Source: Macrostomum lignano (lineage: Eukaryota). Taken from it: 64,000 nt of DNA. Below, in pieces: positions 16,865-47,171 of the stretch. The number at the start of each line of letters is the position of its first letter. The first letter of the stretch is position 1. Below the pieces are notes generated by a model. The model saw nothing but the letters and a program-made list of their open reading frames with translations. It did no database searches and had not been told where the DNA came from. The position numbers and the translations under genes are program-made. The stretch covers positions 1 to 64,000 of the forward strand of contig NIVC01002364.1 of assembly GCA_002269645.1 (NCBI GenBank), written 5' to 3'.

Positions 16865-19800
16865 CTAGGACGCTTTGGCTTTCTGGCTATTACTAATATT
16901 AGTGAAATAGTCTGCTTTGACAAGGCGGACCAGCAGGACGATGTTCATAACGCTGATGACAACCAGACCGGAGGCGCCTAGCAGAGCCACTGGAAGCGGC
17001 AGCAGGCGCCAATTTGACCAAATCCAACGAACCATCCAGGCTGTGGTGATGCCGCGAAATGTCACCAGAGTGCCTGCGTAGTGTGCCAGAATTAACTGAG
17101 TTAGCAACTGACGCGACATCTGAGCCTGATAGCGCCAAATTAGGGCAGGAATAGGCGCCAAAAAAAGAATTTAGACACCAACTTTGGAATTAAGGCACCA
17201 AAGTTGGAATTGAGGCGCCAAAGTTGGAATTGAGGCGCCAAAGTTGAAATTGAGGCGCTAAGGTTGGAATTTAGGCGCTAAGGTTGGAATTGAGGCGCCA
17301 AAGTTGGAATTGAGGCGCTAAAGTTGGAATTGAGGCGCAAAATGGGGTTAAGGTGGCGCTAAAGACAGGCGCCAAATGGGGTTAAGGTGGCACTAAAGAC
17401 AAGCGCCAAATGGGGTTAAGGTGGCACTAAAGACAAGCGCCAAATGGGGTCAAGTTGGCGCTAATTACAGGCGCCAAAGGCCAAGCGACCACTAACGACG
17501 TGTTCAGTTTCAAACACTCACCAACATTAGCCGCGCATAGAAACCGATAAACAATCGAACTTCGATTTGCTCTTCGCAAATTAGCCAGCTGTCTGGCATG
17601 CAGAAATATCGAATTGACCTCCATGAATAGGGACACCACGGCGAAGGCGACGTAGGTCCTCTGAACAACAGCCAGACCGTAGGTGATAAAAATCTAAAAT
17701 TATGATTTGATTTTTCATTGACAAAACATTTCAATACGAGTACTTTTCAAACTGTAAAAAGAGCAACCAAGAAATTATTTTATTGACAATTTTACTGATA
17801 ACTTGTCAAAACTGCAACTTTCTAAAGCCCAATTCTGTCTCTTAGGTGGTGGCGCCTCTGTCTCTTATGTGGTGCTACTGTCTCGTAAAAACTTATTGCA
17901 ATTTCAGAACAGAAAAGATTTGGCTGTCTATTCTCTGAGAATTTATCATCAAGTTCTATCAATTTTAAAAATAGTTGCAATAATTGGTGCTACTTTTAGT
18001 AGCTCATAAAAAGATGAAGAAAGTTGCCATATTTTAATAAATTCAAAGTTTTACTGGCGATAAGTTTGTTCATCTTGAATAATAAAATATTTCCGAGGGC
18101 GCACAGAAGATAGATAAACAAAAAATGAAACCAATTGTCGTTTCTATAGTGCAACGAATAAGTGAACTGTTTTAATCATGATTTTTACTCACCTTTTTGT
18201 ACCGTTCCAATCTATTGTTTTATAGATTATTGAGGTTATAAAATATTATAAATATTTGTTAAAATAAAAAGCTTCAGTGGCCTATACTTGTCTAATTTTT
18301 AAAGTACATTTAGCGTAGATTAAGTACAATTGGTTTACGATTATTTTGACACGTTTATGATGCTTCAGTGTGGGTTAATGATGGTTTAGTGTGGGTTAAT
18401 GATGGTTCAGTGTGGGTTTGGGATGCTTCAGTGTGGGTTTGGGATGCTTCAGTGTGGGTTTGGGATGCTTCAGAGTGGGTTTGGGATGCTTCAGAGTGGG
18501 TTTATGATGCTTCAGTGAGGGTTTATGATGCTTCAGTGTGGGTTTATGGTGCTTCAGAGTGGGTTTATGATGCTTCAGTGTGGGTTAATGATGCTTTAGT
18601 GTGGGTTAATGATGGTTCAGTGTGGGTTTGGGATGCTTCAGTGTGGGTTTGGGATGCTTCAGTGTGGGTTTATGATGCTTCAGAGTGGGTTTGGGATGCT
18701 TCAGAGTGGGTTTATGATGCTTCAGTGAGGGTTTGGGATGCTTCAGAGTGGGTTTATGATGCTTCAGTGTGGGTTTATGGTGCTTCAGAGTGGGTTTATG
18801 ATGCTTTAGTGTGGGTTAATGATGCTTTAGTGTGGGTTAATGATGGTTCAGTGTGGGTTTGGGATGCTTCAGTGTGGGTTTGGGATGCTTCAGTGTGGGT
18901 TTATGATGCTTCAGAGTGGGTTTGGGATGCTTCAGAGTGGGTTTATGATGCTTCAGTGAGGGTTTATGATGCTTCAGAGTGGGTTTATGATGCTTCAGTG
19001 TGGGTTTATGATGCTTCAGTGTCGGTTGATGATGCTGCAGTGTCGGTTGATGATGCTTCAGTGAGGGTTTATGATGCTTCAGTGTCGGTTGATGATGCTG
19101 CAGTGTCGGTTGATGATGCTTCAGTGAGGGTTGATGATGCTGCAGTGTCGGTTGATGATGCTTCAGTGAGGGTTTATGATGCTTTAGTGTCGGTTGATGA
19201 TGCTTCAGTGTGGGTTGATGATGCTGCAGTGTCGGTTGATGATGCTTCAGTGAGGGTTGATGATGCTTCAGTGTGGGTTGATGATGCTGCAGTGTCGGTT
19301 GATGATGCTTCAGTGTCGGTTGATGATGCTTCAGTGAGGGTTGATGATGCTTCAGTGAGGGTTTATGATGCTTCAGTGTCGGTTGATGATGCTTCAGTGT
19401 GGGTTGATGATGCTTCAGTGAGGGTTTATGATGCTTCAGTGTCGGTTGATGATGCTTCAGTGAGGGTTGATGATGCTTCAGTGAGGGTTTATGATGCTTC
19501 AGTGTCGGTTGATGATGCTTCAGTGAGGGTTGATGATGCTTCAGTGAGGGTTGATGATGCTTCAGTGTGGGTTGATGATGCTTCAGTGTGAGTTTATAAT
19601 GCTTCAGTGTGAGTTTATAATGCTTCAGTGTGAGTTTATAATGCTTCAGTGTGAGTTTATAATGCTTCAGTGTGAGTTTATAATGCTTCAGTGTGAGTTT
19701 ATAATGCTTCAGTGTGAGTTTATAATGCTTCAGTGTGGACTCATTAAGTTCCATAGCAATTTTAGGAAACTTCAGCATGGGTTTGATACTTCAATGTGTT

Positions 19801-22800
19801 GCTGCGTACCTAAGCCCATTAGCATACGACCAATGCAAACCCAGTTTATAAAGTTCTATCATAGTTTTTGTCATACAATATATGATTTTTTATTAAGTCA
19901 AAAGTCCACAAAGAAAACTGCAAGCTAAGATAAGGCAGGGTTGCAGAAAGAGCCAAAAAATTCTAAAGTCAGCCGACTACGCCTATCAATAGAATAGCGA
20001 GATTAACCAGTTTAAAGCTACCCTTTGCACCCTTACATAGAACGGAGAAATACTGCAAACTTGAGCTATAAAAAGTCACGCCACTAAAAAGAACGCAGCA
20101 CACTAGTTGAAATAGTGATAATTGAGCTACCGATCAAAGGGCAAAAGTGCAGACTAATTAGAATTCACAACTCAAGACACGACATTAAGTCTGCCAACTT
20201 ACAATAAAATGGTGAAATAGTAGTTCAATAGTTTCCGTTGAAACCTTTCTTCGTAGCATGTGAATAGAGTCGTGTACAAAGTAGCCTGGAATGCAATACG
20301 GTAAATGTTAGTAGAAGGTTAGCCAGTTAGATACAGGATCTAAGAGTAGATCATTGCTGAGGGCCAGATGAGAGTGGGAAGGAGAGGAAATGGGGGAGAG
20401 AAAAGAAAAAAGATGAAGAAAAGAGATAACAGAAGAGAGTAGAGGTGAGAGGCTAGATGAGAGATGGGATGAAGGAGAAGATAAGAGGAGGGGGGAGATG
20501 AATGGAGAAAGGATGAGAGATGAGAGATGAGAGCGCGCCGGGGGGTTGAGGGTCATTTAAAGTCATGGAAATTGCTGCAACTTTAATTTTATACATTAAC
20601 TCCACAGTATGTTTATGTAATAAAAATTACCTAACGAGAAGCAAATTAAACCGAGGGCCAATGGTGTACAGGTGCTAACAACATCTTCCAACATTGCTGG
20701 TCGCAGGTAAACACTAAAAATTGATTGGAGAAAGGAGGATTAATGTTCAGACATAAATAATCAAATATAAAAGTTTAAAATGAGAATTATAAAAAAGCAA
20801 TATAAAGCCCTAGCCTTTTATTATGAGAATTACCCTACCCTTTGAATTTGCAGAAGTTGCAGAAGTCTGCAGACTCCATGCTTACAGATTACTTAAATTT
20901 GACAATTAATAGAAGTCGAGACATCCAAGGAAAATACTGAACTTAAATTAAATAGTGTCTAGCTTTGAGAGAACCATTTGGCATTCAGAGTTGAGGATCA
21001 AGATTCAAAAAGTATACTTGATATGTCATGATATGCACTGAAACCAAAACTTTCCCATAAACTAACCCTAGAATTTCCCATAAACTAACCCTAGATTTCC
21101 CATAAACTACTCCTAGAAATTCTCATAAACTAACCCTAGAATTACCAATAAACTACCCCTAGAATTGCCCATAAACTATCCCTAGAACTGCCAATAAACT
21201 ACCCCTAGAACTGCCAATAAACTACCCCTAGAACTGCCAATAAACTAACCCTAGAACTGCCTATAAACTACCCCTATAAATGCCTAGAAACTACCGCTAG
21301 AACTGCCTATAAACTACCCCTAGAAATTCCAATAAACTAACCATAGAAATGCCTATAAACTACCCCTAGAAATGCCAATAAACTACCCCTAGAATTGCCT
21401 ATAAACTACCCCTAGAACTGCCTATAAACAACCTCTAGAATTGTATATAAACCACTCATAGAATTGCCAATAAAATACATTAAGAATCATATAAATAATT
21501 TCAATACTAGACCTAAATGTCTATGGTAAAAATTATTGTCATTATAGTAGCAAAATTGGGGGCAGGGGCAAGCTCAATATCAAGTGCTCAGGAACCAATA
21601 CAACACAATGATCAAGATAGCAAATTTTTACTATGATTTATTTGAAATTGAAGACTTCTAGACTTATACCTATGCTAAATACAGTCTTGGAATATCCACA
21701 ATGAACTATTCAAAGTTTATAAAGTTGCAGCACCAGGTCAATCAACCGTTTACAAATGGTGCTTAAGTTCTATGGCTTTGAAGTATTTCCCCTGGCCTTA
21801 GCTCCTTGGACCTGCCAGTCATGATCAACAAGGACAATAGAACTGATTGAGACTTACCAAGCTTTTGTTGAAGAAGATTCAAAAGTTCATATCCAAGACC
21901 TTACTGACTTAGTAGAAATTAGAAAAAACAACTGCACAAAATTTTTATTTGCACTTGGATTTCCAATTTGAAAAGTTTTAGCTATCTGGATTCTGCAAGC
22001 TCTCCCTAACAAGAATAGGTTGGCAGGCTTTTAGCTAATTTTTGACAACACTAACATAAAGTAAAACAAAAGGTACTAGCTTAGACAAGGGGGTTATTGA
22101 CTATATTTAACAACCACAGTGAAGTTTGAGAAGCTATGTTGCTTGCAATGGGCAAGAGGCCTTGATAAAAGATTGGTTGAAAAGAGAGTTTTAGCAAATC
22201 ATTGACAATTTTACAAATATATAATCAATATAAGGGGACATTATAGTACCAACTAGTACTATTTATTACTACCATGTTTTTTAACAGTTCTGACTAGTTT
22301 TTTCTAAATATTCTCAATGACTTTCTAGATAGGCAAAAGAATAGTCATGTTACATTTGTCATTTATCTAAAAATGTATAAATTTTTGCTTAGGTTTCTTT
22401 TATATAAATAAGTCATTTTCTGGTAAAAAAAGAAAAATGTATAGTTAGTATAAATTAAGGGGAGTTATATATATGGTAAAAAAATGGTTAATTTAGGGAA
22501 AAGGTATACAGATCCTGGACTATTTGTCTGCCCTGGGCAAATGGCCAGTGGACTATTTGTCTGCCAGATTATTTGTCTGCCCTGGGCAATTGGCCAGTGG
22601 ACTATTTGTCTGCTGGTACTAAATAGTGGATGTGGTAACTGATATAGGTTTTTGGACACTTCGGTAACAAGATGCTTCTGTGACAGCTGTTTCAGCAACA
22701 AGTCATATTGGTAACAAATGTTGCAATAACTTATAGCATAATAGAGTTCCTAACTTTTTTATAGTCATTTAATGCGTCACTAGAGAAATCCCAACTTCAA

Positions 22801-29000: not shown

Positions 29001-32000
29001 CCACCAGGTTCCTGCTGTTCCCTAATTCTAGCTTTAGGTTTAAAGAACTGAGTCAGGACACCAATTTAGACTTAGTTAACACAAAAAAATATTTAATAAA
29101 AGTAAATTATGGTACAAAAGTTAGTTTTGTTTTACATTAACTCCCTATTCCCGCTATAGTGCTTTGGGCAAGACTCCCAGTATTTAGAGGCAAGACTCCT
29201 CTGTGCAATCCTAACCCTTATATTTCCCTTTCTTACCACATCTGCGTGACTTTCTGAGTTAAACAGGAGAAGACACTCCAACAAACAGGTTTTTCTTTCC
29301 CAAGAGCCCAACTGCTCTGTAGTTCTAAAGGAACCCCAATTTTATCCACTTACCCCCGCGCTAATTATTTCCCCGGGTTGAAACTACTGATAGTAGGGTA
29401 AAAGCATATCCAAACCTGTAAAATTTCCGTTTCTAAAATAATGCCCTACTACACTTATAATTGTCACTCAGTTCAACCCTATAATTGTCACTCAGTTCAA
29501 CCTTATAATTGTCACTCAGTTCAACCCTATAATTGTCACTCAGTTCAACCCTATAACTGTCACTCAGTTCAACCCTATAACTGTCACTCAGTTCAACCCT
29601 ATAACTGTCACTCAGTTCAACCCTAAATATTTTCTGCAATTTCATTCTCACCGCTTCAGGCAATTGGCGCTACACAATCGAAGACGTGTCAACAAAAATG
29701 TCAGAAGCTGAACGAAATCGAGTCCTGTCTCAGGAAAAGGAGGTGAGGAATGACACCGTATTATTGATGGTTGATAAAGGTAACTCAGCTACAAGTACAA
29801 AGTGTACTTAAGCACGCATTGACCCCTCCCTCACCTGAGCAGAGAATCAAGCTCAAATCGGAGAGCAAGCAGGTATTTCGACAAATCGATTTCGAAATGC
29901 CAACGGAACCCCTGCGGGTGCTGGTTCGAGGAGAGATAATGACAGCAAAGCACTTTGAGTACGATCACCTGTATGTGCACTTCTTCTTGGACCTGACTCC
30001 CGGTAGGTTTTATTAAATTAATTATGTGGATTTATTTACGATATTTTATCGAACATTAAAATTGCGTCACAGAGGCTTGAATCGCATTTAATTCATTTCT
30101 ACGTCAAGTCGTAACTATAATTGAAAAAAACTAAAATAGTTTTACGACTAGTGCAGTAGTGATTAAATTTGTATTCAGTTTATCATTTATCGTATTATTC
30201 CCCATATTTCTACTATCAGTAGTGTATTAAATAAAAGTTCATAATGAATAGTTTTATGCTTGTAAAATTCAGCAATTTTTACTGAAAGTAAAGAATCAAG
30301 AAAATGTTGTTCTGCGTATAGTAAATTTTTCGTGAATTTTTATATAGAACATTTGTTGATGGTCAGCCCAGCATTTACGATCTATAAAAACTTAAAAAGA
30401 TTTACGGCTCGTACTATCTATAAAATTTCGACTCGTACTGAAGAAAGCTCTATAAAGCTTGTGAAAAGAGAATGCAAGTTTATTGGAATCTGATTCCAAT
30501 TCTGATTTTGAGCACAGAATTAAAACAAACCAGCCGATCTATGCTTGGTTGAAGATCAACTTTGAGGCTATCTGATTTGTCTGTTAAAAAGGTTCTAAAT
30601 GTTAACATCTTTGTCAAAAGCAAATGAATTTTTTTCGGAAGTTTTTAACGATCTTCGTGCAGTCTTTAGCAGAGCATAAAGCCATTGAATAAATAGCTGA
30701 TTAACTAATTTTTCAACTGTTTCATAATTTCAGATTGGTTTGTAAAAACTGCAGCCGGACTGTCCGGCACAACGCAAATTTGTGCTACAAAAGTGGAAGA
30801 AGTTGTAAGTTCGTGAATTTTTTATTTTTTTAGAGTTCGTGAATTATTGGCGTTGGGATCACTCTTAATTTAAAATAAAAGCTGCATGCTTATCACGGAA
30901 CTTTGTTAAATTGGAATGATAATAGTTCAAATAGCTTTAGCTTATCAGTACTAATTATATTTATTGCGCATGCAAAGAATTTGCATGTATTTGTTTTAAT
31001 ATTTGGTCGCGGTAAAACAGACTGATTAAAACAAAAAATAGGATTGTTATATAAAATACCGATACAAGCATGCACGTAGTAGATTCGTCATTTAGATTAA
31101 AACTGAATTTTTTTTCAATTATATTTTCAACTCCTGTTAAACACACATGGTACCATTTTCAGCTAACACCAATTGAACGAAAGGTTTGTATGGAAATCGT
31201 TTCTCGAGTTTTTGCCTCTTTGATAGTGTAGGTTTACGGAATAAAATATTGACTTGTTCTATTCTGCAACGCAACCAATTTTATTTCTAGACCTTATGTT
31301 CGAAACTCCTTGATTTCTGTATTTTCTATCATTCGCACGTACTAATAATTTAAACTTCTAAATGAAGCAAAAGCAGGTAAACTAAAGTCGCCATGCCTTA
31401 TTCCGCTCAGAGAGTTTGGCTCTCATCTCAATGAAAAAAATTAATTTTATATTATTAGTTTCATGTTGTGACAATTATCTTTGAATTATATTGGATCAGA
31501 AATTCTACAAATACAAAATCAATTTATGTAGCAGCACCGTGATCTCTGCTACTTCTAGTAACTTAAAGGAATACATGTATTATTTAATAATCTATTTTTC
31601 CTAGAAATTCAAATTCAAGCTTCGCATGATTTTGACTCGTTCTATTTTTACGCATTAAATTCCGCATTTTCAGGACGACGTGGCTCATTTCTCATATCCG
31701 TTTGAGTTTGAGATCTTCTTTGAGCGGCTGGTACCGGCTGGGGAGGACGGTGAGTAGTTTAGAGATTTGATACTTAGTATCAGGGAATATTTTATTTATC
31801 AATAATGCGATTGATTGAGGAACCATACTGCCACCGACCGCTGCCCACAGATTACACATTCCCGCGCTGGCCCATCATGTATTTCGAGGTGATGTCGCAG
31901 GACAGCTGGACTCGACACCGGACCGAGGGCTACACCTATTTGACCCTGCCAGCTACCCCGGGACCGCACGACTTCTGTCTGCAGTGCTGGCGGCCCACGG

Positions 32001-32055
32001 GCAACTCCGTTGTGTGCGAGCTGCGGCGCTTCTTCATTGGTCAGTTGGCTGTCTG

Positions 32056-32152
<97 letters not shown>

Positions 32153-32169
32153 AATCTATCTTCTATCTA

Positions 32170-32226
<57 letters not shown>

Positions 32227-33345
32227 GTGGTACACCGGAGCTAGAGGACAGCACATTCACCAACGTGCCAACCGACTTCGACGGTACCCACTTGAGCAAG
32301 TTCGGCTTCAACACGGAGACCACTGGCGAGCTGACGGTGCGGCTGCACTCGATTCACCAGTCGGCCCGACTGGCCGAGCTTCGCAACGCGGCAGCCGGGG
32401 TCGGCCCTGGCGGCGTCATGCAGAGCGGCGCCGGCGCCGGCAAATTCTCTAGCGACTTTGGCGGAGCCGCCGGCCCGAGCTTCCTGGACCTGCACAGGGC
32501 GCTGAGTGAGTGCCAGGCTTTGATATCGATGTTTTTCACTCGGATTGTTTAAGGAAACTGCAGCTGCATATGTGCACGCGTTTCATATATGTACAAATAC
32601 CTTAGCAGATCATGGACAAATGGATCGCTTTCACAGGCTCAAAGTTTCACTAATTCGAAGCTTCACAAGCTGTAAGCCCCACAAGCTGTAAGCTGTAAGC
32701 TCCACAAGCTGTAAGCTGTAAGCCCCACAAGCTGTAAGCTGTAAGCTCCACAAGCTGTAAGCTCCACAAGCTGTAAGCTCCACAAGCTGTAAGCCCCACA
32801 AGCTGTAAGCACCACAAGCTGTAAGCTCCACAAGCTGTAAGCCCCACAAGCTGTAAGCTCCACAATCTGTAAGCTCCACAAGCTGTAAGCTCCACAAACT
32901 GTAAGCTCCACAAGCTGTAAGCTCCACAAGCTGTAAGCTCCACAAGCTGTAAGCTCCACAAGCTCCACAAGCTGTAAGCTCCACAAGCTCCACAAGCTGT
33001 AAGCTCCACAAGCTGTAAGCTCCACAAGCTGTAAGCTATAATCCTTTATTCGCATGCCTATCTATCGTACATGCAGCCTGAAAACAAAGTCCATGCGATT
33101 TGCAACCCCGAAAACGACCTTGCTTGCACACACAATGTCTAGACGCATTCCAACGAGCCCGTCAGCGCCTTCAAGAGGCCAGACGGGCTCACGTGACGCT
33201 CGATCATCGTCAGCAGCTCGACTTGCAGCAGCAGCAGCAGGAACAGCAACAGCAACTGGAAGCAGATCCGGATGCAGAGCAGCTCATGCGAGAGTACAGG
33301 GAACTCGCATTGGCGCCCGATGGGGCCGCCGAGTCTACAGCTTGA
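26075..33345 (+). CDS. MKS1: Meckel syndrome type 1 protein ortholog (B9/C2 domain, ciliary transition zone), 614 aa
   Basis: Exons 26075-26151, 27283-27450, 27555-27636, 27714-27814, 28341-28642, 29660-29742, 29789-30002, 30734-30804, 31674-31749, 31851-32039, 32227-32505, 33143-33345 (1845 nt, phases match). MKS1 hallmarks: [86 protein letters not shown]. Confidence 0.95.
28676..29625. repeat. 24-bp minisatellite (ttgtcactcagttcaaccctataa) in two blocks (28676-28888, 29450-29625) separated by ~560 bp of unrelated sequence
   Basis: The same unit is visible in both blocks within MKS1 intron 5. Confidence 0.92.
32050..32222. repeat. (TCTA)n followed by (TA)n microsatellites filling MKS1 intron 10
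   Basis: Visible; the (TA)n runs up to the acceptor acag at 32223-32226. Confidence 0.97.
32660..33037. repeat. 16-bp minisatellite (ctccacaagctgtaag)
   Basis: Visible; explains the [15 protein letters not shown] ORFs. Confidence 0.95.
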
Positions 33346-35731: not shown

Positions 35732-35897
35732 AACTCACCGTCCACTGGCCGCAGGTCTGGCGCGAGCCGGATGAGAACGAAGAGCTGCAAGCTGCGCTAC
35801 TCAAGTACGCCAACAAGCGCAATGTGAAACAAAAACCACAAAGTCCTGTAGAAGAGCGTCTAGCGCGATTCTACGAACTTGTAACGGAGCTCCAGAA
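35732..35897 (+). pseudogene. Orphan 166-bp copy of coding sequence 44719-44884 of the giant gene
   Basis: Direct comparison shows 4 mismatches in 166 bp and no indels; the flanks are unrelated non-coding sequence. Confidence 0.92.
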
Positions 35898-39440: not shown

Positions 39441-39599
39441 CCCCCCCCCCTCTTGGTAGTTCTACTGTTATTCAACGCTTCGAAAACATTTCGTACGACT
39501 GCTAAAACTATACGAATATTAAATTCATGAAACAGTCATGCGCTTGCGCATATCGTTTTGGAGGTAGATATTGAGGAATTTTTGCTACGAGTGACGAAA

Positions 39600-42500
39600 A
39601 TGAATCATTGTTATGACAAAACCATATGTGCAATCTACCATTATCTCATGCACCTTACACCCAATAAAATTTCGCAACCACTTCTCGAAGAGAACCACTT
39701 TGCACAAAACATTGCAGAACATAAAACCAAGGATGAGCTGGGGAGGATTTTTGAAATTCCTATTCGGCGCAGCCTGTCTGCTGGCGGCGGCTGCAGTGAC
39801 ATTTTTTTTACCGTTTCACTTACTGTCAGCGTCCTCATCTCCGGACTGACCAGTGCGGGCGTAACTGCTCTCTACGGCGCTTGGAGTAATCTGGATTGGA
39901 AACCATTCTGGAAAGAGGTTGGCCTAGGCGCCTTGATCGGTGTAGTCAGTGGTGTCTTTTCTATTGCTGCCTCTGCTGCCACAGCCAGTTTAACTGCGAA
40001 TATGCGAACATGGGGCTTTAAAGCCTTAGCTACGAATTTATTGATACGGGGTGCGGCAGGTGCTATCACAGGTACCATTGCTAACGCCGTTATTAACTTC
40101 GTGCAAGGCAGGGCATGGAACGAAAACCTTCTTCGCGCTGTCTTCTCGACCACTCTCGCCGCCATTGTTCCTATTGTGTTCGAACGACCATCAATCGAAC
40201 GATGCATCAAAAAGTTTATCACTGAGCACCTTCCAAAAATTACAGCAATACAAGAAATCCTTGCCCACACTGTGTCTAATATCGTTGGACAGCTGGTATT
40301 CACCGGTACAGTAGATCAATCCCTTCTTCTTTGCTCAATGGCAGGCGGTTTGGCCATCACCGGAGCCCGTTACTGGCGGGCCAGTAGACAGCAGCAACAG
40401 CCGAGTCAGTTGGTCAAAGAAGGTAACCCAGAAGCCCCTGAAGATAACCAGGCGACCGATGGAAAAAAGCAGAATGTAACAGCAGAGGAAACCACTCAAG
40501 AAAATAGACAACAAACGACAACCCAGAAACAAGAAAGCACACAAAAGGCAAAAAAACCGTCCAGCTCGGCAACGACAAAGACTACTCCAGAAAATACACA
40601 AAAAACGACAAACCAGAAACAAGAAAGCACACAAAATGCAGGAAAATCGTCCAGCTCGGCAACGACAAAGACTACTCCAGAGAGTAGACAAAAAACGACA
40701 ACCCAGAAACAAGAAAGCACACAAAATGCAGGAAAATCGTCCAGCTCGGCAACGACAAAGACTACTCCAGAAAGTAGACAACAAACGACAACCCAGAAAC
40801 AAGAAAGCACACGAAATGCAGGAAAACCGTCCAGCTCGGCAACGACAAAGACTACTACAGAAAGTAGACAACAAACGACAACCCAGAAACAAGAAAGCAC
40901 ACAAAATGCAGGAAAATCGTCCAGCTCGGCAACGACAAAGACTACTCCAGAAAGTAGACAACAAACGACAACCCAGAAACTAGAAAGCACACGAAATGCA
41001 GGAAAACCGTCCAGCTCGGCAACGACAAAGACTACTCCAGAAAGTAGACAACAAACGACAACCCAGAAACAAGAAAGCACACGAAATGCAGGAAAACCGT
41101 CCAGCTCGGCAACAACAAAGATTACTCCAGAAAGTAGACAACAAACGACAACCCAGAAACAAGAAAGCACACAAAATGCAGGAAAACCGTCCAGCTCGGC
41201 AACGACAAAGACTACTCCAGCAAAAATATATGGAGCAGCACTAAAACTACAACAAAGTATTCACACTGATCACCTTCTCCCTCGTCACAGCGACACTGGA
41301 GGATTTACCCTCCTAGGTCATCATGGTGACTTCCCTCCACCATCTGCTTCAACGCTTGAAAGAACCGATGAGACTCTGAAGCCTCTGAAGCCTCTGAAGC
41401 CTCCGAAGTCTCCTCATCCCGAAGGAAATGAGCTACCAATGCCACAGACTGGTCATTCTGAAAAACCGCATAATGCTGAAAATCATAATTTTATGCATTC
41501 TGCAAAAACACATGACAAAATAAAAAAAAACAGTGACCCAGAAAATCTCTCGCCGTCAGAAAATGCCTCACTGCCAGGAAATTCCACAGCGCCAGAAAAT
41601 GCCTCACCGCCAGAAAATGCCTCACCGCCAGAAAATGCCTCACCGCCAGAAAATGCCTCACCGCCAGAAAATTCCTCACCGCCAGAAAATGCCTCACCGC
41701 CAGAAAATTCCTCACCGCCAGAAAATTCCTCACCGCCAGAAAATGCCTCACCGCCAGAAAATGCCTCACCGCCAGAAAATGCCTCACCGCCAGAAAATGC
41801 CTCACCGCCAGAAAATGCCTCACCGCCAGAAAATGCCTCACCGCCAGAAAATGCCTCACCGCCAGAAAATTCCTCAGCGCCAGAAAATGCCTCACCGCCA
41901 GAAAATTCCTCAGCGCCAGAAAATGCCTCACCGCCAGAAAATTCCACAGCGCCAGAAAATGCCTCACCGCCAGAAAATTCCTCAGCGCCAGAAAATGCCT
42001 CACCGCCAGAAAATGCCTCACCGCCAGGAAATTCCTCAGCGCCAGAAAATTCCTCACCGCCAGGAAATTCCTCACCGCCAGGAAATTCCTCACCGCCAGG
42101 AAATTCCTCACCGCAAGGAAATTCCTCACCGCCAGAAAATTCCTCAGCGCCAGGAAATTCCTCACCGCCAGGAAATTCCTCACAGCCAGGAAATCCCTTG
42201 CCGCCAGAAAATCCCTCGCCGCAAGGAAATCCCTCGCCGCCGGAAAATTCCTCACCGCCAGAAAATTTCCCACCGCCAGAAAATCCCTCACCGCCGGAAA
42301 ATGCGCTACCAATGCCGCAGACTGATCTTGCCGAAAAGCCGCATGATACTAAAAAACAAGATTCACCCAAAAAGACCAGTAACCGACAAAAAGACGCACA
42401 GAAACAAGAAAGCACACAAAAGGCAAACGATTTGTCCAGCTCATCCACGACAAAGACTACTCCAGAAAATATGCAAGAAACGACAACCCAGAAACAAGAA

Positions 42501-45500
42501 AGCACACAGAAGGCAAGCGAATCGCCTAGCTGGAAAACGGTAAAAGAGACTCTAGAAAATGGACAAGAAGATAATAGAGCAGCTGTCCTGAAAGATGTCT
42601 CGGCCAACAATGGCAAAGCGCATGCAATCAAACAGACGGATTTGGCTGTCGAGAGTACAACTTCGGTAAATAGACATGGAGCAGCGTCGCAACAACAGAA
42701 TGCTTACACTGATCACCCTCTCCCTTCAAAATTTCATGGCACAATCACTTCATCACATCCGGAAAATCCGGCACCGCAACCAACTCGTCTTGAAAGTCTT
42801 ACCCCAACAAGAATAGAAATGCTTTCTCATGTTGCGTCAAGTATCGTTGAGCAACTCGTATCGAACGGCGAAACTGATCCCGCTCTTCTTGCTTGCTCAA
42901 TGGCAGGCTGCCTGGCTATCACCAGAGCCCGGTACTTGCAGACTATTAGAAGGCAGCAACGGTCCAGTGAGTTGGTCAAAGAAGATAATAGGGAGGCCCC
43001 AGAAGATAACCGGGCCACCGATGGAAAAAAGAAGGATGAAGCAGCAGAGGAGACCACTCGAGAAAATGGACAAGCAGGTAATAGAGCAGCTGTTCCGAAA
43101 GATGTCCCGGCCAGCAATGGCGAAGCGCTTCCATCAATACCAGAATCCGGTCGTGCTGAAAAGCATCATAATACTGAAAAACCATATACAATTAAAGAGA
43201 CCGGTGACTCACCTAGAGAATTGCTCAAAGAGTCCCGCGACGCGAAAAAACAGGCAGTGTCACCAATGTTGGAGACTGCTCAGGATGAGGATCCTAAAAG
43301 TTTAAGCAACTACGCTTTGGGCACAGACGCCTCATTGCATGCCTCGGCATCTTTTACAAGCAACAGTGGCACTGCTAATACGGATCGTTCTCGAATGCCC
43401 GAAGGAGCGATTTGTGATACGCTTTCGCCGCCGCCTCCTCCACCGCCACCAGCCGCTCTAAATGTAGGATACCAGCAAGCTCAGCAAACTATCAAGAAAG
43501 AGAGGGCGCCTCTCATATTCAGCTCCACTATGGAGCTCTTACAGTACAAAGCGCAACGCAAACGAGAAGCGGACGAAGCCAAGCAGTTGGCGCACATGCC
43601 GTCGCCTAAAACATTCGAGACAGCCACTTCGAGGACAGCAAGTGATGCTGCTAGCCGAAGCTCTGGGGGCATTGGAAGAGGGTCACAAAATGCTGACTTG
43701 CAACCCTTTGGAATGAACACTGCTGACTCTGATAACAAGGAGTCAGGAAAGGAAGAAAAGGACACACCTAAGCACTTTCAAAATGATCGAGACGAAAAAA
43801 TTCATCCGCAAGCAGAGGCGTCAGTTGAGAGTTTCTCAGTTAAGGTATCTGCCGACTCCGCCCCTTCATTGAATCTGTGCAGAGTGGTCCCTCTGATTCT
43901 GTGGGACGAAAAGGATCAAAAGTACAAAATGGGAGATCCTGCTGAGTGGCAGCTGCCCCAAGGGCTCAAGGTAATTGCGGTCAGTGGGTCTATGCGGAGT
44001 GGAACCACCACATTTATTCACGACCAGATTATGGACTTCGGCTATCAGTTCACGGAGAACCAGATCGCTGCCACCCTGTTCAAGGTCGGAGTGGTCATGT
44101 ACGTATTGGAGAAGGAGAAAGTCGTGTTTCTGGACATTTGTGACAATATCGACAACATCAGCGGTGCTCTGGACAGCAGCGACTGCACAGAAGAGGAAAA
44201 AATCGAGCAAGGCTTCTGTCCAGCTGGAAACTTCTTGTTGGACCTCTTTGGCTTTGCTGCATCCACCCACTTTATCCTGCACTGCTCGATTGACCCCGAG
44301 CTTTCGGAAGTCGACTCGCAGAGTATCACAAAACCGTTCATTTACGCCAAGATGAAATTTCTCGCGTGCAATATTGACAAGTTTCTCCAACGCGGAGGTC
44401 CAGCACAGCTCAGCGTGGTGCTCCGCGCAAAGAAGAGCAAAGTCATAGTGCGCTACGCAGACGATTGGGATGAAACCATTATGCTCAATTCCAACGCGGT
44501 GGAATCTGACTCTGACTTTCAAGATGATGTCGTAGAAGACAAGAAGCTGATGCAGCTCTTTCCCGTCAGAAGGTTCTACCCGCTGAAGTATTATCCTGTT
44601 CAAGGTGGGATCTCAGTCCGAACAAATGAGAAACTCTCAAAGCAGCGAGAGGCAATCAAGGAGGCAATTCAGCAATCGAAAGTTCACTTGGCGTCATTTC
44701 CCAACGAATATCTGCCAGAACTCACCGTCCACTGGCCGCAGGTCTGGCGCGAGCTGAGTGAGAACGAAGAGCTGCAAGCTGCGCTACTCAAGTACGCCAA
44801 CGAGCGCAATGTGAAACAAAAACCACAAAGTCCTGTAGAAGAGCGTCTAGCGCGATTCTACGAACTTGTAACGGAGCTCCAGAAGTATTCTGCAGAAAAG
44901 TTTCCGGAACACGACCTACTCAGCAGGTTGAAAGAAGCGCAGGAATGGTGTCACGCGAAGACAGAAGAGTTTCAGCAGTCTGTCGAGGACATGCGAGATC
45001 CGACCACTCCATTCCAATGCATCCTCAAATTCGCGGAAATCATTCTCAGGACTGGACTCAGCATCTCTAATCTCAGGGAGGTGGAACTGAAAAATCGCTG
45101 CTTGGAAACCAGTCTAAGAGGCTACACTGTTCTCATCTGGTGCGAGGAGCCAATGCTGGAGTTCCTCTTTGCCAGATTAGCAATCAATGAATTCTCTGCT
45201 CTGAGCCTCCTCACTGACGAAGCCGTCTGCACAATGTTCGATGGTGCTTGGATGTTTTTAGCCCGAGCCGCCGACTTTGGCTACAAGCTGTCTCTGGCCC
45301 GGCACGGTGTGGTGGGCATCGCGATCCGCTGTCTGGCATCCAATCGATTTTTCCCACAGTCCAGCAGGATGCGCTTCTACATACTGCTCACACTGAGGAA
45401 TATGGTTGAGGATGATGTCAGATTTCCCATGAGCACATACGCCAACGACATTGCTGGAAAATATCAGCTTCCTCAGAGCGAGGTTGATTTCGAGAAACTC

Positions 45501-47171
45501 TTGTGTGAGGTGTCCTACGACGCCAAGGAGCTTGCGGAGAAGCTGGCGCTCAATGCATTTGAACGCGCTGGCGAAACAGTATCTGAAGATGCATTCATCA
45601 CAAAATATACGGAAGTGGTTCAGAGAAAACTTCGGTGCGACCCGAGCAACCAAACGACGCAAGCGGTCGGGTTGAAGGACACGGAGACTCAGAAGAGGTG
45701 GCAGCGAATCACAGGAGCCTTTTTCAATCGCCTCTTCTTCGAGATTGGAACGCGAACGGCGCGACAGATCCTGGAGCTTCGGAATGACGAATCACCAGAC
45801 GCCTATCAGATCTTCAGGGAGAAATTGTGTCGCAATGACCCGGACCCTGACTGTCTTCGGCAGCAGGCTCACATAATTCACTGCATGCTGCAACTCGAGG
45901 AGACGAACCTGTCAAAAATTATTATTAATATTCAGGAGCTCCGAGACTTCATTGTCTACCAGTTGCGCAACTTTCTTGACCTACCCTCATACCGAGCTGT
46001 CCTTGGACTGGCGGCTCAGGCAATGCATGAGGAACACCGGATGAGAAATGAAGGTGAAAAACAACAGCAGCAACAAGAAGAGAAAGTTCAGGACATGAAC
46101 ACAATGCGCCGACAAGAGCAGCGACTGCTTGAGAAGCAACAGTTCGGAGAGCTTCAGCTTCTCCTTCTGCGCAACGACTGTCTTCAGCCGATTCTGGACG
46201 CTTTGCTGAAACGCGCCATCAAGGACAGCGACACTCCAACAACCATATTCTCCCATGTTCTTACGGAGCTGCTGCTGAGCAGTGAAGAGGAAGAATATAA
46301 AAAGTTGTCTCTCGCGATTTTTGCTCAGCAAATCAGAGGAGTTCGCGCTCACGCTATTGATCAGCTGTCCCGCTGCTTGCCGAGCAAAACGGAGACCAAG
46401 GAACCCTTTGCCGGATGCTACCGCAGCGCGTCTGCCGCTCTCATGCTGTACAACAAGCTCAGCGCTGTCTACTTCCGTTGCTGCGACAGCGACGGCGATT
46501 TGTCGCTTGAGTTTCTGCGGCTGTTCTACAAGAAGCTGAGCACTGAGGACAAGACCGAGTATGCAAAAGCAGCCATCAGCTCGGAAGCTGTCGAGACGGC
46601 AGTGAAACTGGTTCTTGACCTTAACAGGTTCAAGGATCAAGACGGTGCTGAGCTGAAGTTCCAAACTCTGATTTTCCTATGGAATCTGCAGGTAAGGTTC
46701 AATGAACCAATTATTAACTTGTTAAAGTGAAGTAGCGATTATCTTTGCTGAATATTTTTATTCTGATATAGTGAATGACGCTTCAACTGACGTAAACTAC
46801 GATTCCAGGAAACATCCGGCCTCTCCCTGATCGACGCCAAGCGGAAGCATCTCGGCCAAAACATTGGCAGCCTATCCGACGTCAGGAATGTGAAACTCTA
46901 CTGGCACAAGAGACAGGTGGCCGATGAGCGAGTCGGATTCTCCGAGGAGCAGGTTGCACGGCTACTCCTCTTCCTGGAGAGCAACAGCGACACCGACAAG
47001 GTCGCCTCACTTCTTGAATTGAATTTCGCATTCAGATGGGGAGCGAAGCACGCGAAGGATTTCTGTGAGCTGCAGGACGAGAGGCAGAAGCTGTGGAAAG
47101 AAGCCAAGCTTCGGTTCCAAGCAACGCAAGCCAGAAATGCTCGACTCCGACGTTTCGAAAGGAAAGACTGA
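39600..47171 (+). CDS. Giant ~2480-aa protein: Gly/Ala-rich hydrophobic N-terminal helices, Ser/Thr/Pro-rich coding repeats, degenerate GBP/atlastin (GB1/RHD3)-like GTPase domain, helical/ARM-like C-terminus
   Basis: Uninterrupted ORF 39558-46730 (first ATG 39600). Donor CAG|gtaagg at 46691/46692 and acceptor ttccag|G at 46809 join in phase 0 to a terminal exon ending TGA at 47171. P-loop-like GSMRSGTT at 43986-44009. The true start is uncertain. Confidence 0.85.
40490..41220 (+). repeat. Coding 90-bp tandem repeat (~8 copies; TTPESRQQTTTQKQESTQNAGKSSSSATTK)
   Basis: actactccag anchor at 40581 and 40671, continuing at 90-bp spacing; in frame. Confidence 0.95.
41545..42300 (+). repeat. Coding 18-bp tandem repeat (~40 copies; PPENAS/PPENSS/PPGNSS)
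   Basis: Visible, in frame with the giant ORF. Confidence 0.95.

Follow-up and report, generated by a model that had tools for sequence, protein, structure and literature searches.

The window analysed here is a stretch of 64,000 nucleotides (nt) from Macrostomum lignano (contig NIVC01002364.1), and the subject of this study is a very large gene on its plus strand. An open reading frame (ORF) scan of the window shows a plus-strand frame that is open from 39558 to 46730, which corresponds to 2,390 codons. Assuming about 3 stops per 64 codons, the probability of such openness is about e^-115, and the frame is therefore not a product of chance. It makes up most of the following gene structure:

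39600..46691, plus strand: exon 1 as read in the original prediction, 7,092 nt and 2,364 codons, where the ATG at 39600 is the first in frame
46692..46808, plus strand: intron of 117 nt, gtaagg...ccag, GT-AG
46809..47171, plus strand: exon 2 encoding the C-terminal tail, 120 codons plus stop, with the TGA at 47169-47171

The donor site (ctgcag/gtaagg) follows position 46691, the acceptor site (ttccag/gaaaca) is found at 46808/46809, and the joined exons hold 2,484 codons plus a stop. The splice junction, WNLQ/ETSGLSL in the protein, is the same as in the annotated paralogues P0002 and P0004, and the residues after it carry on the homology with nematode and fungal relatives. The original prediction had described a giant, almost intronless gene, and this was confirmed by the open frame and the splice junction with coordinates that are exact apart from the start codon. 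It had also considered retroposition, which is not supported given the conserved intron. We regard the locus as a functional-looking two-exon gene; the predicted protein has about 2,450-2,480 amino acids (aa) and is a member of a eukaryotic family without a name. From the N-terminus, the predicted protein is composed of a membrane region, a repeat linker, an alpha/beta module, a helical region and a short tail. The C-terminal ~1,050 aa are free of repeats, with an alpha/beta part followed by an all-helical part according to the secondary structure in low-confidence models.

The closest proteins in the database are hypothetical proteins of M. lignano with 71-93% identity, and there are several paralogues in this species. 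All database models, including P0001 from this locus, have their start beyond the repeats, so that the N-terminal region is missing and the models for this family are truncated. The main paralogue used for comparison is L001, the locus of P0002 on NIVC01000023.1, which holds a single ORF of 2,301 codons with the same domains as the window gene. When the two loci are compared, the N-terminal hydrophobic domain is 55-67% identical and the C-terminal part 86% identical, and the linker is wholly different. The ratio of nonsynonymous to synonymous substitution rates (dN/dS; Nei-Gojobori, NG86) between the two copies is 0.35-0.47; by region it is 0.47 in the N-terminal domain (dS 0.38), 0.22 in the first 300 C-terminal codons, which hold the P-loop-like part, and 0.45 in the remaining, helical codons (dS about 0.1). 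These values, together with the single ORF in L001, argue that both ends of the gene are under purifying selection and held in one frame. The dN/dS comparison had been proposed as a check in the original prediction, and it gave no sign of positive selection for any whole domain. The dS to L001 is about four times higher in the N-terminal domain (~0.38 for 39828-40388) than in the C-terminal 940 codons (~0.10 for 43866-46691), a contrast that suggests gene conversion or a mosaic or chimeric history.

When 1.84 billion cluster representatives were searched by phmmer with the last 947 aa of the protein, only 11 hits were obtained: M. lignano paralogues, two proteins of Plectus sambesii, proteins of Mesorhabditis belari, Pristionchus entomophagus and Gigaspora margarita, and four metagenome proteins. 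All relatives detected are eukaryotic or come from unassigned metagenome contigs, none of them is named, and the only Pfam family above its curated cut-off among them is a UBX domain in P0011. The spread is patchy and comprises a single flatworm, nematodes of three free-living genera, an arbuscular fungus and a few environmental contigs. Three of the nematode proteins are complete at the N-terminus (P0006, P0007 and P0011), and these have the same order of parts, with a hydrophobic N-terminal domain, a low-complexity linker, a P-loop-like domain and helices. A profile search with the cross-phylum alignment returned M. lignano paralogues alone, and a degenerate 150-nt motif pattern gave nothing when run against metagenome contigs. 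Literature searches on the locus tag and on the architecture found nothing describing this family.

The beginning of the coding region is complicated by a homopolymer at which two reading frames meet:

39613..39849, plus strand: N-terminal ORF in the conserved frame, MTKPY... from 39613 and MSWGGFLKFLFGAACLLAAAAVTFF from the ATG at 39733, ending with the TGA at 39847-39849
39802..39809, plus strand: T8 homopolymer, meeting point of the start frame and the main ORF frame, 1 nt shorter than in L001

In the locus alignment the T8 site reads TTTTTTTTA in the window and TTTTTGTGC in L001. Alignment of the two loci with translation in all frames shows that the frame kept open in both copies is MTKPY...(40 aa)...MSWG[G/R]F.KFLFGAACLLAAAA.T.F. 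In L001 this conserved start frame passes into the main ORF without interruption, while in the window (ATG 39613, or ATG 39733 for MSWG) it lies in +1 relative to that ORF. The frame that gives MNHCYDK... upstream of T8 holds two stops in L001. Because this frame is interrupted twice while the other one is conserved in both copies, the first ~70 residues of the protein starting at 39600 (MNHCYDK...) are probably not real. ATG 39733 is the probable true start and would provide the first membrane helix; in the nematode relatives, too, a hydrophobic helix precedes the conserved 'ISAG' helix. The window copy at T8 represents a true frameshift or a homopolymer error in the assembly, and it may thus be N-terminally damaged or mis-assembled. 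The T8 run followed by A forms the slippery heptamer T TTT TTA, where a -1 shift joins the frames into a product of the same length as in the paralogue. Programmed -1 frameshifting was nevertheless rejected in favour of a simple indel because the 90 nt of RNA 3' of T8-A fold no better than shuffled sequences (z = -0.21; paralogue +0.64).

The region after the homopolymer encodes the most hydrophobic part of the protein:

39810..40400, plus strand: N-terminal membrane domain of 4-5 hydrophobic helices with a high content of Gly, Ala and Ser; W..F, N...G and TG are conserved positions

Kyte-Doolittle hydropathy gives 4-5 membrane-length segments in the first ~200 aa, or 5-6 with the conserved start, and no further segments of this kind in the rest of the 2,484 aa. 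The hydrophobic segments begin within ~10 residues of the conserved start and reach Kyte-Doolittle values up to 2.5. The small-residue hydrophobic helices quoted in the original prediction are consequently supported by hydropathy; the ~70 residues placed before them are not, since their frame stops in L001. The domain can be aligned with L001 and with the three nematode proteins. A profile built solely from the three nematode N-terminal domains scores the window domain at 36.8 bits, compared to maxima of 9.3 bits for 500 global shuffles and 18.4 bits for 500 local shuffles (10-aa window). As all shuffles are outscored, we take the N-terminal domain to be a conserved eukaryotic domain rather than a recent bacterial graft.

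Comparisons of the N-terminal domains of five family members with Pfam, NCBIfam and PDB profiles rendered no significant match and none below E = 0.03, and no weak match was common to more than two of the five. The NCBIfam family BTH_I2691, an effector of the type VI secretion system (T6SS), was matched by the window sequence only (E = 0.058-0.33; 9-12 bits, where the cut-off is 150) and was absent from all four relatives scanned. No glycine-zipper Pfam family was listed for the domain, nothing with significant bacterial similarity was found for it in NCBIfam, and a word search through 5.8 billion proteins gave no match and hence nothing bacterial. The helices resemble those of glycine-zipper toxin and T6SS domains in their small-xxx-small spacing and in an abundance of Gly, Ala and Ser, but all relatives found for the N-terminal domain are eukaryotic. 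Strongly hydrophobic helices about 10 residues from the methionine, conservation across phyla and purifying selection give the domain the appearance of an anchor. It would therefore be a resident anchor inserted co-translationally, not a toxin that inserts conditionally.

The linker between the membrane domain and the C-terminal part covers aa ~275-1420 and has a high content of S (14%), P (12.5%) and T (11%). The following arrays and duplicated segments were found:

40494..41220, plus strand: tandem array of 90 bp (30 aa) x8.1 with TTQKQESTQNAGKSSSSATTKTTPESRQ-type units
41538..42302, plus strand: tandem array of 18 bp (6 aa, PENASP/PENSSP) x42.5 with one N-x-S sequon per unit
42399..42569, plus strand: second 90-bp tandem array, short, x1.9
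40251..40514, plus strand: internal duplication, copy A, aa ~218-305, end of the N-terminal domain and start of the linker
42822..43070, plus strand: internal duplication, copy B, aa ~1075-1157

The repeat linker of more than 800 aa that had been described earlier is thus well founded, with three tandem arrays in the window. Every period, in the window and in L001, is a multiple of three. The units of the 18-bp array (PENASP, PENSSP and PENSTA) generate ~40 consecutive N-x-S/T glycosylation sequons. The L001 linker has arrays of 90 bp x3.2 and of 30 bp x61 (PTPSGHPALQ) and no 18-bp array, and the nematode linkers are rich in P, T, A and Q. This comparison points to a disordered linker that is evolving very fast through gain and loss of tandem repeats. 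The claim of an undescribed and fast-evolving invertebrate family can be retained with regard to the lack of a description and the rapid change of the linker (PENASP x42 compared with PTPSGHPALQ x61), but the restriction to invertebrates cannot, given the relative in Gigaspora.

The internal duplication consists of the last helix of the N-terminal domain and the first ~50 residues of the linker, and L001 has a single copy of this segment. The database protein P0001 begins at a methionine at 42900, inside copy B. A side observation concerns the linker of the Mesorhabditis belari protein P0006, where residues ~420-475 (GCAEPD...(40 aa)...PPCDSC) have the spacing of a zinc-dependent deaminase signature. 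A deaminase was rejected at this site: the CAE...PCxxC spacing is present, but no Pfam family matches at E <= 10.

The C-terminal part starts with a domain that resembles P-loop NTPases:

43866..44717, plus strand: P-loop-NTPase-like alpha/beta domain, 15 invariant positions in family alignment A5
43968..44012, plus strand: Walker-A-like segment, KVIAVSGSMRSGTTT, GSMRSGTTT with Thr at the lysine position
44121..44144, plus strand: Walker-B/G3-like strand VVFLDICD, hhhhDxCD/E in the family, without the glycine of DxxG

The elements of the domain are an N-terminal beta-hairpin, a Walker-A-like loop, a beta2-turn-beta3 hairpin and two more strand/helix units. In alignment A5, built up by seven sequences, the order is a hairpin, hhhhhG-x3-SG[R/T]T[T/M]-x-[I/S]H, a GY pair, VGVxMYV[LF], a four-residue turn and hhhhDxCD, followed by the two strand/helix units, the second of which closes with hhLR. 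The lysine position is occupied by Arg in the nematode and metagenome relatives (GxxxSGRT[TM]), by Thr in M. lignano and by Ala in P0004; the Thr is common to the window copy and L001/P0002. The candidate G4 strand, assigned by position only, is VVLRAKK, and the family has hhLR and a variable residue here but no Asp. Walker A and Walker B are ~45 residues apart and are joined by a tight beta-hairpin. The pattern can be described as P-loop-like, and it appears GTPase-like by this spacing and the tight hairpin. The evidence allows the domain to be called a degenerate P-loop/GTPase-like pseudo-enzyme and nothing more specific.

Searches with the whole window protein, nine relatives and seven isolated domains never listed the Pfam families GBP (PF02263), Dynamin_N or RHD3 at E <= 10, and PDB profile searches gave no match to GBP, atlastin or dynamin. 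For the whole window protein, each of its domains and four family profiles, nothing significant was found among Pfam, NCBIfam and PDB sequences. The PDB matches below threshold (E = 0.09-1.7) nearly all cover the Walker A loop of unrelated NTPases, and the targets below threshold in PDB and Pfam were ABC, DEAH, SRP54, adenylate kinase, AAA_18 and nSTAND (E = 0.04-1.7). The family profile was also compared by hhalign with the GTPase domains of GBP1 and atlastin-1, queries that were confirmed against PDB 1dg3 and 3q5d (696 and 756 bits), and with dynamin-1, H-Ras and adenylate kinase as controls:

GBP1: P = 0.005, probability 7%, 53-78 columns
Atlastin-1: P = 0.17, 19 columns
GBP1 and atlastin-1 profile: P = 0.042, 24 columns
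Dynamin-1 (control): P = 0.011, 27 columns
H-Ras (control): P = 0.023, 19 columns
E. coli adenylate kinase (control): P = 0.035, 23-24 columns

The alignment to GBP1 is the longest and has the hairpins in register. Membership in the GB1/RHD3 group is not supported because this alignment is non-significant and is not reproduced by atlastin. The AF2 model of the alpha/beta region (420 aa, five close paralogues aligned) has a pLDDT of 38.4, which makes it unusable for fold comparison. The similarities to GB1/RHD3 GTPases (GBP1, atlastin and RHD3/Sey1) are the N-terminal beta-hairpin, the strand/Gly-rich loop/helix, the beta2-turn-beta3 hairpin leading to hhhhD, the long helical region that comes next, the association with membranes and the hhalign register with GBP1 residues 12-98. 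On the other hand, G1 is GxxxxG[R/T]T here and GxxxxGK[ST] in those GTPases, G3 is DxCD instead of DxxG, and the strand at the G4 position keeps an Arg and has no Asp. Furthermore, the anchor is N-terminal and polytopic here as compared to C-terminal or lipid, a repeat linker of ~1,100 aa lies between anchor and domain, and there is no significant similarity. Of the GBP-like module in the original prediction, the nucleotide-binding-like alpha/beta architecture stands, while the assignment to GBP or GB1/RHD3 falls on the Pfam, PDB and hhalign results and on the missing G1, G3 and G4 residues.

The rest of exon 1 and the second exon contribute two further features:

44718..46691, plus strand: all-helical region (~660 aa) with the family motifs GLxGhT and W.hL..AA..G[FY][KR]h.L (alignment A2)
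47133..47156, plus strand: RNARLRRF, resembling a VCP-binding motif (VBM), four residues from the C-terminus, 7/8 positions of RRhRLxRF

The AF2 model of the helical region (658 aa, five close paralogues aligned) is all alpha with a pLDDT of 42.4, which again is unusable for fold comparison. No match to Pfam or PDB was found for the region, and no ARM, HEAT or TPR family of Pfam was matched in any family member. The tail had been called ARM-like; its all-helical nature agrees with the low-confidence model, and the ARM-like character has no profile support.

The window protein ends ...QATQARNARLRRFERKD. The VCP-binding motif has the consensus EhRRRRLxhh with the form RRhRLxRF in RHBDL4, in which RF sits where the FPR loop of UBX binds the p97 N domain (PMC5389986). 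Compared with the C-terminal VBM of RHBDL4, the window protein has a similar RxhRLxRF-like helix at its extreme C-terminus but Asn in place of the second Arg of the consensus. RNARLRRF is identical in all M. lignano paralogues with a modelled C-terminus (P0002, P0004 and P0005). The Gigaspora-like metagenome protein P0014 ends ...EARLKRFSNNQ with ARLKRF at the matching position. End-to-end alignment of the exon 2 tail and the P0014 tail gives a score of 83, compared to a mean of 30 (standard deviation 4.8) for shuffled sequences, and none of the 500 shuffles reaches it. No motif of this type was found elsewhere in any family member. A UBA-like domain in exon 2 was considered and rejected (E = 0.07) as it was not recovered by profile search.

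Pfam finds no UBX domain in the window protein. The nematode members run ~450 aa past the end of the flatworm protein, and at least P0011 ends in a UBX domain (26 bits; the Pfam cut-off is 21). The only PDB matches for a profile of three nematode tails were UBX proteins (UBXN6, p47 and PUX1; E = 0.014-0.8). Membrane-tethered cofactors of p97/VCP such as UBXD8/FAF2, UBXN4 and Rep8/UBXD6 likewise combine a membrane anchor with a C-terminal module for the p97 N domain, which in the present family is putative. They differ in being ~270-500 aa long and in having neither a P-loop-like nor a long helical module, and the homology is limited to the UBX domain or the motif. Rep8 is described in PMC3174242 as tethering p97 to the membrane of the endoplasmic reticulum.

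Taken as a whole, the locus can be read as encoding a giant membrane-anchored protein in which a hypervariable tether carries a pseudo-NTPase and a helical scaffold, and which may recruit p97/VCP. We hold this combination of anatomy and function tentatively, as a reading with somewhat less than an even chance. The anatomy taken by itself is very probably as described above; a p97/VCP function taken by itself is doubtful. According to this proposal, the N-terminal domain would be inserted co-translationally as a resident membrane anchor and would not act as a conditional pore, leaving the linker and everything C-terminal of it on the cytosolic side. The NTPase-like module would be a pseudo-enzyme and would form, with the helical region, a scaffold of structural or regulatory function. 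The extreme C-terminus would recruit the AAA+ unfoldase p97/VCP (Cdc48) to the anchored membrane, by means of the VBM-like helix RNARLRRF in the flatworm and Gigaspora-like members and by the UBX domain in the nematode members. A membrane-tethered p97 adaptor or scaffold is proposed mainly because two types of module that bind the p97 N domain share the C-terminal end of homologous proteins. An extended form of this proposal, which we consider unlikely, is that the proteins are giant p97/VCP adaptors with a polytopic membrane anchor and constitute an undescribed eukaryotic family in which the p97-binding end has been swapped between UBX and an RHBDL4-type VBM. The patchy distribution would, if these are p97 adaptors, reflect repeated loss or transfer between eukaryotes that share habitats.

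Several observations weigh against the reading as a tethered p97 adaptor. The link to p97 consists, for the window protein, of a match to an 8-residue motif, and the UBA-like match of exon 2 is non-significant. Only a single nematode protein has a UBX match that exceeds the threshold, and the profile search gives a borderline result for UBX. Both AF2 models relevant to the P-loop-like fold are poor (pLDDT 38 and 42), and the topology is derived from hydropathy and charge only. The ~40 N-x-S sequons of the 18-bp array would fit a linker in the lumen or outside the cell. Finally, patchy taxa, multiple paralogues and a hypervariable linker are also expected of a gene involved in conflict or immunity.

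The alternative that survives best concerns the copy and not the family. The window gene could be a decaying paralogue in which the frameshift at T8 has severed the start and the first helix, with the functional gene elsewhere, for example at L001. The conserved start frame lies in +1 and runs into the stop at 39847-39849, the internal duplication is not found in L001, a stray 162-bp gene fragment is present at 35734-35895, and P0001 begins as far downstream as 42900. Under decay, Walker A of the window copy would also have drifted further, from Arg to Thr; this Thr is not specific to the copy as it is found in L001/P0002 too (Ala in P0004). Moreover, 2,364 codons are open with intact splice sites, and a product with a shorter anchor is possible because the main frame is open back to ATG 39600. 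Differences of 1 nt in homopolymers are a typical error of long-read assemblies, the type of assembly assumed for the window. We consider decay of this copy unlikely.

The original prediction interpreted the protein as an immune sensor-executor, that is a GBP/GVIN-like immune GTPase fused to a pore-forming glycine-zipper executor, where the helical tail acts as a sensor and membranes are permeabilised once the N-terminus has been released or activated. The order of the parts fits, there are several paralogues, patchy taxa and a hypervariable linker, and GBP1 gave the longest hhalign alignment among five P-loop proteins (53-78 columns, from the N-terminal hairpin through the P-loop to the beta2-beta3 hairpin). 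This has to be set against controls at P 0.011-0.035 compared with 0.005 for GBP1, no significant similarity to GBP, atlastin or dynamin, and a Pfam GBP family that is never listed at E <= 10. A GTP-driven switch is unlikely because the G1 Lys, the G3 Gly and the G4 Asp are all missing. With regard to the executor part, the N-terminal domain has no similarity to pore-formers, Rhs or T6SS proteins, and the pore-forming or Rhs-type N-terminus originally suggested found no significant match in Pfam, NCBIfam or PDB. The domain is conserved, is under purifying selection and begins at the N-terminus like a resident anchor, and dN/dS of 0.22-0.47 shows no sign of positive selection at the level of whole domains. 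Horizontal seeding of the N-terminus, also part of that interpretation, disagrees with relatives that are eukaryotic or from unassigned metagenome contigs and with the homology to nematode N-terminal domains. The sensor-executor reading fails because the profile searches gave no GB1/RHD3 or pore-former similarity, and we regard it as improbable. A role in immunity or conflict in a wider sense would fit the patchy spread, the several paralogues and the turnover of repeats, but it has no positive support.

A tripartite protein of NLR/STAND type, with a membrane-targeting death or effector domain, an NTPase switch and a helical-repeat sensor as in fungal HeLo-NACHT-repeat proteins, is more improbable still. 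Such proteins are similar in having a membrane-directed N-terminal module, an NTPase-like module and a helical C-terminal region, so that the tripartite order fits, and in being multi-copy and patchy; a relative is also present in the fungus Gigaspora. The Walker B pattern of NACHT domains is hhhhDGhDE, which the Walker-B-like hhhhDxxD resembles. Weak matches were obtained to nSTAND_NTPase5 (E = 0.037), NB-ARC (0.15) and nSTAND3 (0.27), but all STAND matches, NACHT and NB-ARC included, are below threshold and each occurs in a single member. The spacing of ~45 residues between Walker A and B with a tight beta-hairpin points to a GTPase (TRAFAC) and not to an ASCE/STAND layout, the Walker A lysine is missing in all members, and no winged-helix, ARC, TPR, WD40 or LRR module, nor any other recognisable repeat class, was detected.

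A mucin-like surface or luminal glycoprotein, with the N-terminal domain as anchor, a glycosylated extracellular linker and the C-terminal domains outside the cell, would suit a linker with 14% S, 12.5% P and 11% T and a PENASP/PENSSP array that repeats an N-glycosylation sequon, but it is the least likely of the alternatives, as the sequon array is not kept even in the closest paralogue (PTPSGHPALQ there), the nematode linkers are merely P/T/A/Q-rich, UBX and VBM-like motifs have cytosolic or nuclear functions (PMC5389986), the cytosol is the normal location of P-loop-like domains, and the C-terminal part has no cysteine-rich extracellular modules.

Some additional observations were made in the surroundings of the gene. 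A 162-bp piece at 35734-35895 on the plus strand, 3.7 kb 5' of the giant gene, encodes 54 aa with 94% identity to aa 1708-1761 (LTVHWPQVW...ELQ) of its product and resembles a stray duplicated fragment or a pseudo-exon. Neighbouring ORF pieces on the plus strand match Laminin G and EGF (1427-2841; E = 4e-14 and 6e-5) and the ciliary B9-C2 domain (31805-32452; E = 7e-19); these are ordinary metazoan genes with no relation to the giant gene. The stretch 18001-20000 has an unusually strong GC skew of 0.44, a negative AT skew and long overlapping ORFs at 18368-19591 (plus strand) and 18837-19778 (minus strand), and is probably a strand-biased repeat.

The current gene models of this family in M. 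lignano are cut at internal methionines, so that over 1,000 residues of the N-terminal part are lost, among them those of the membrane anchor. If the protein is an immune effector instead of a p97 adaptor, it would belong to an invertebrate system without detectable relation to the vertebrate GBPs. If the reading as a membrane-anchored scaffold that recruits p97 is true, the family would comprise three new domain families, namely the N-terminal membrane domain, the lysine-less P-loop-like domain and the helical region, and would represent membrane-tethered p97 cofactors of a new class. Such a family would also offer a clean natural example of unrelated p97-binding modules, UBX and VBM, being swapped at the same position in homologous proteins.

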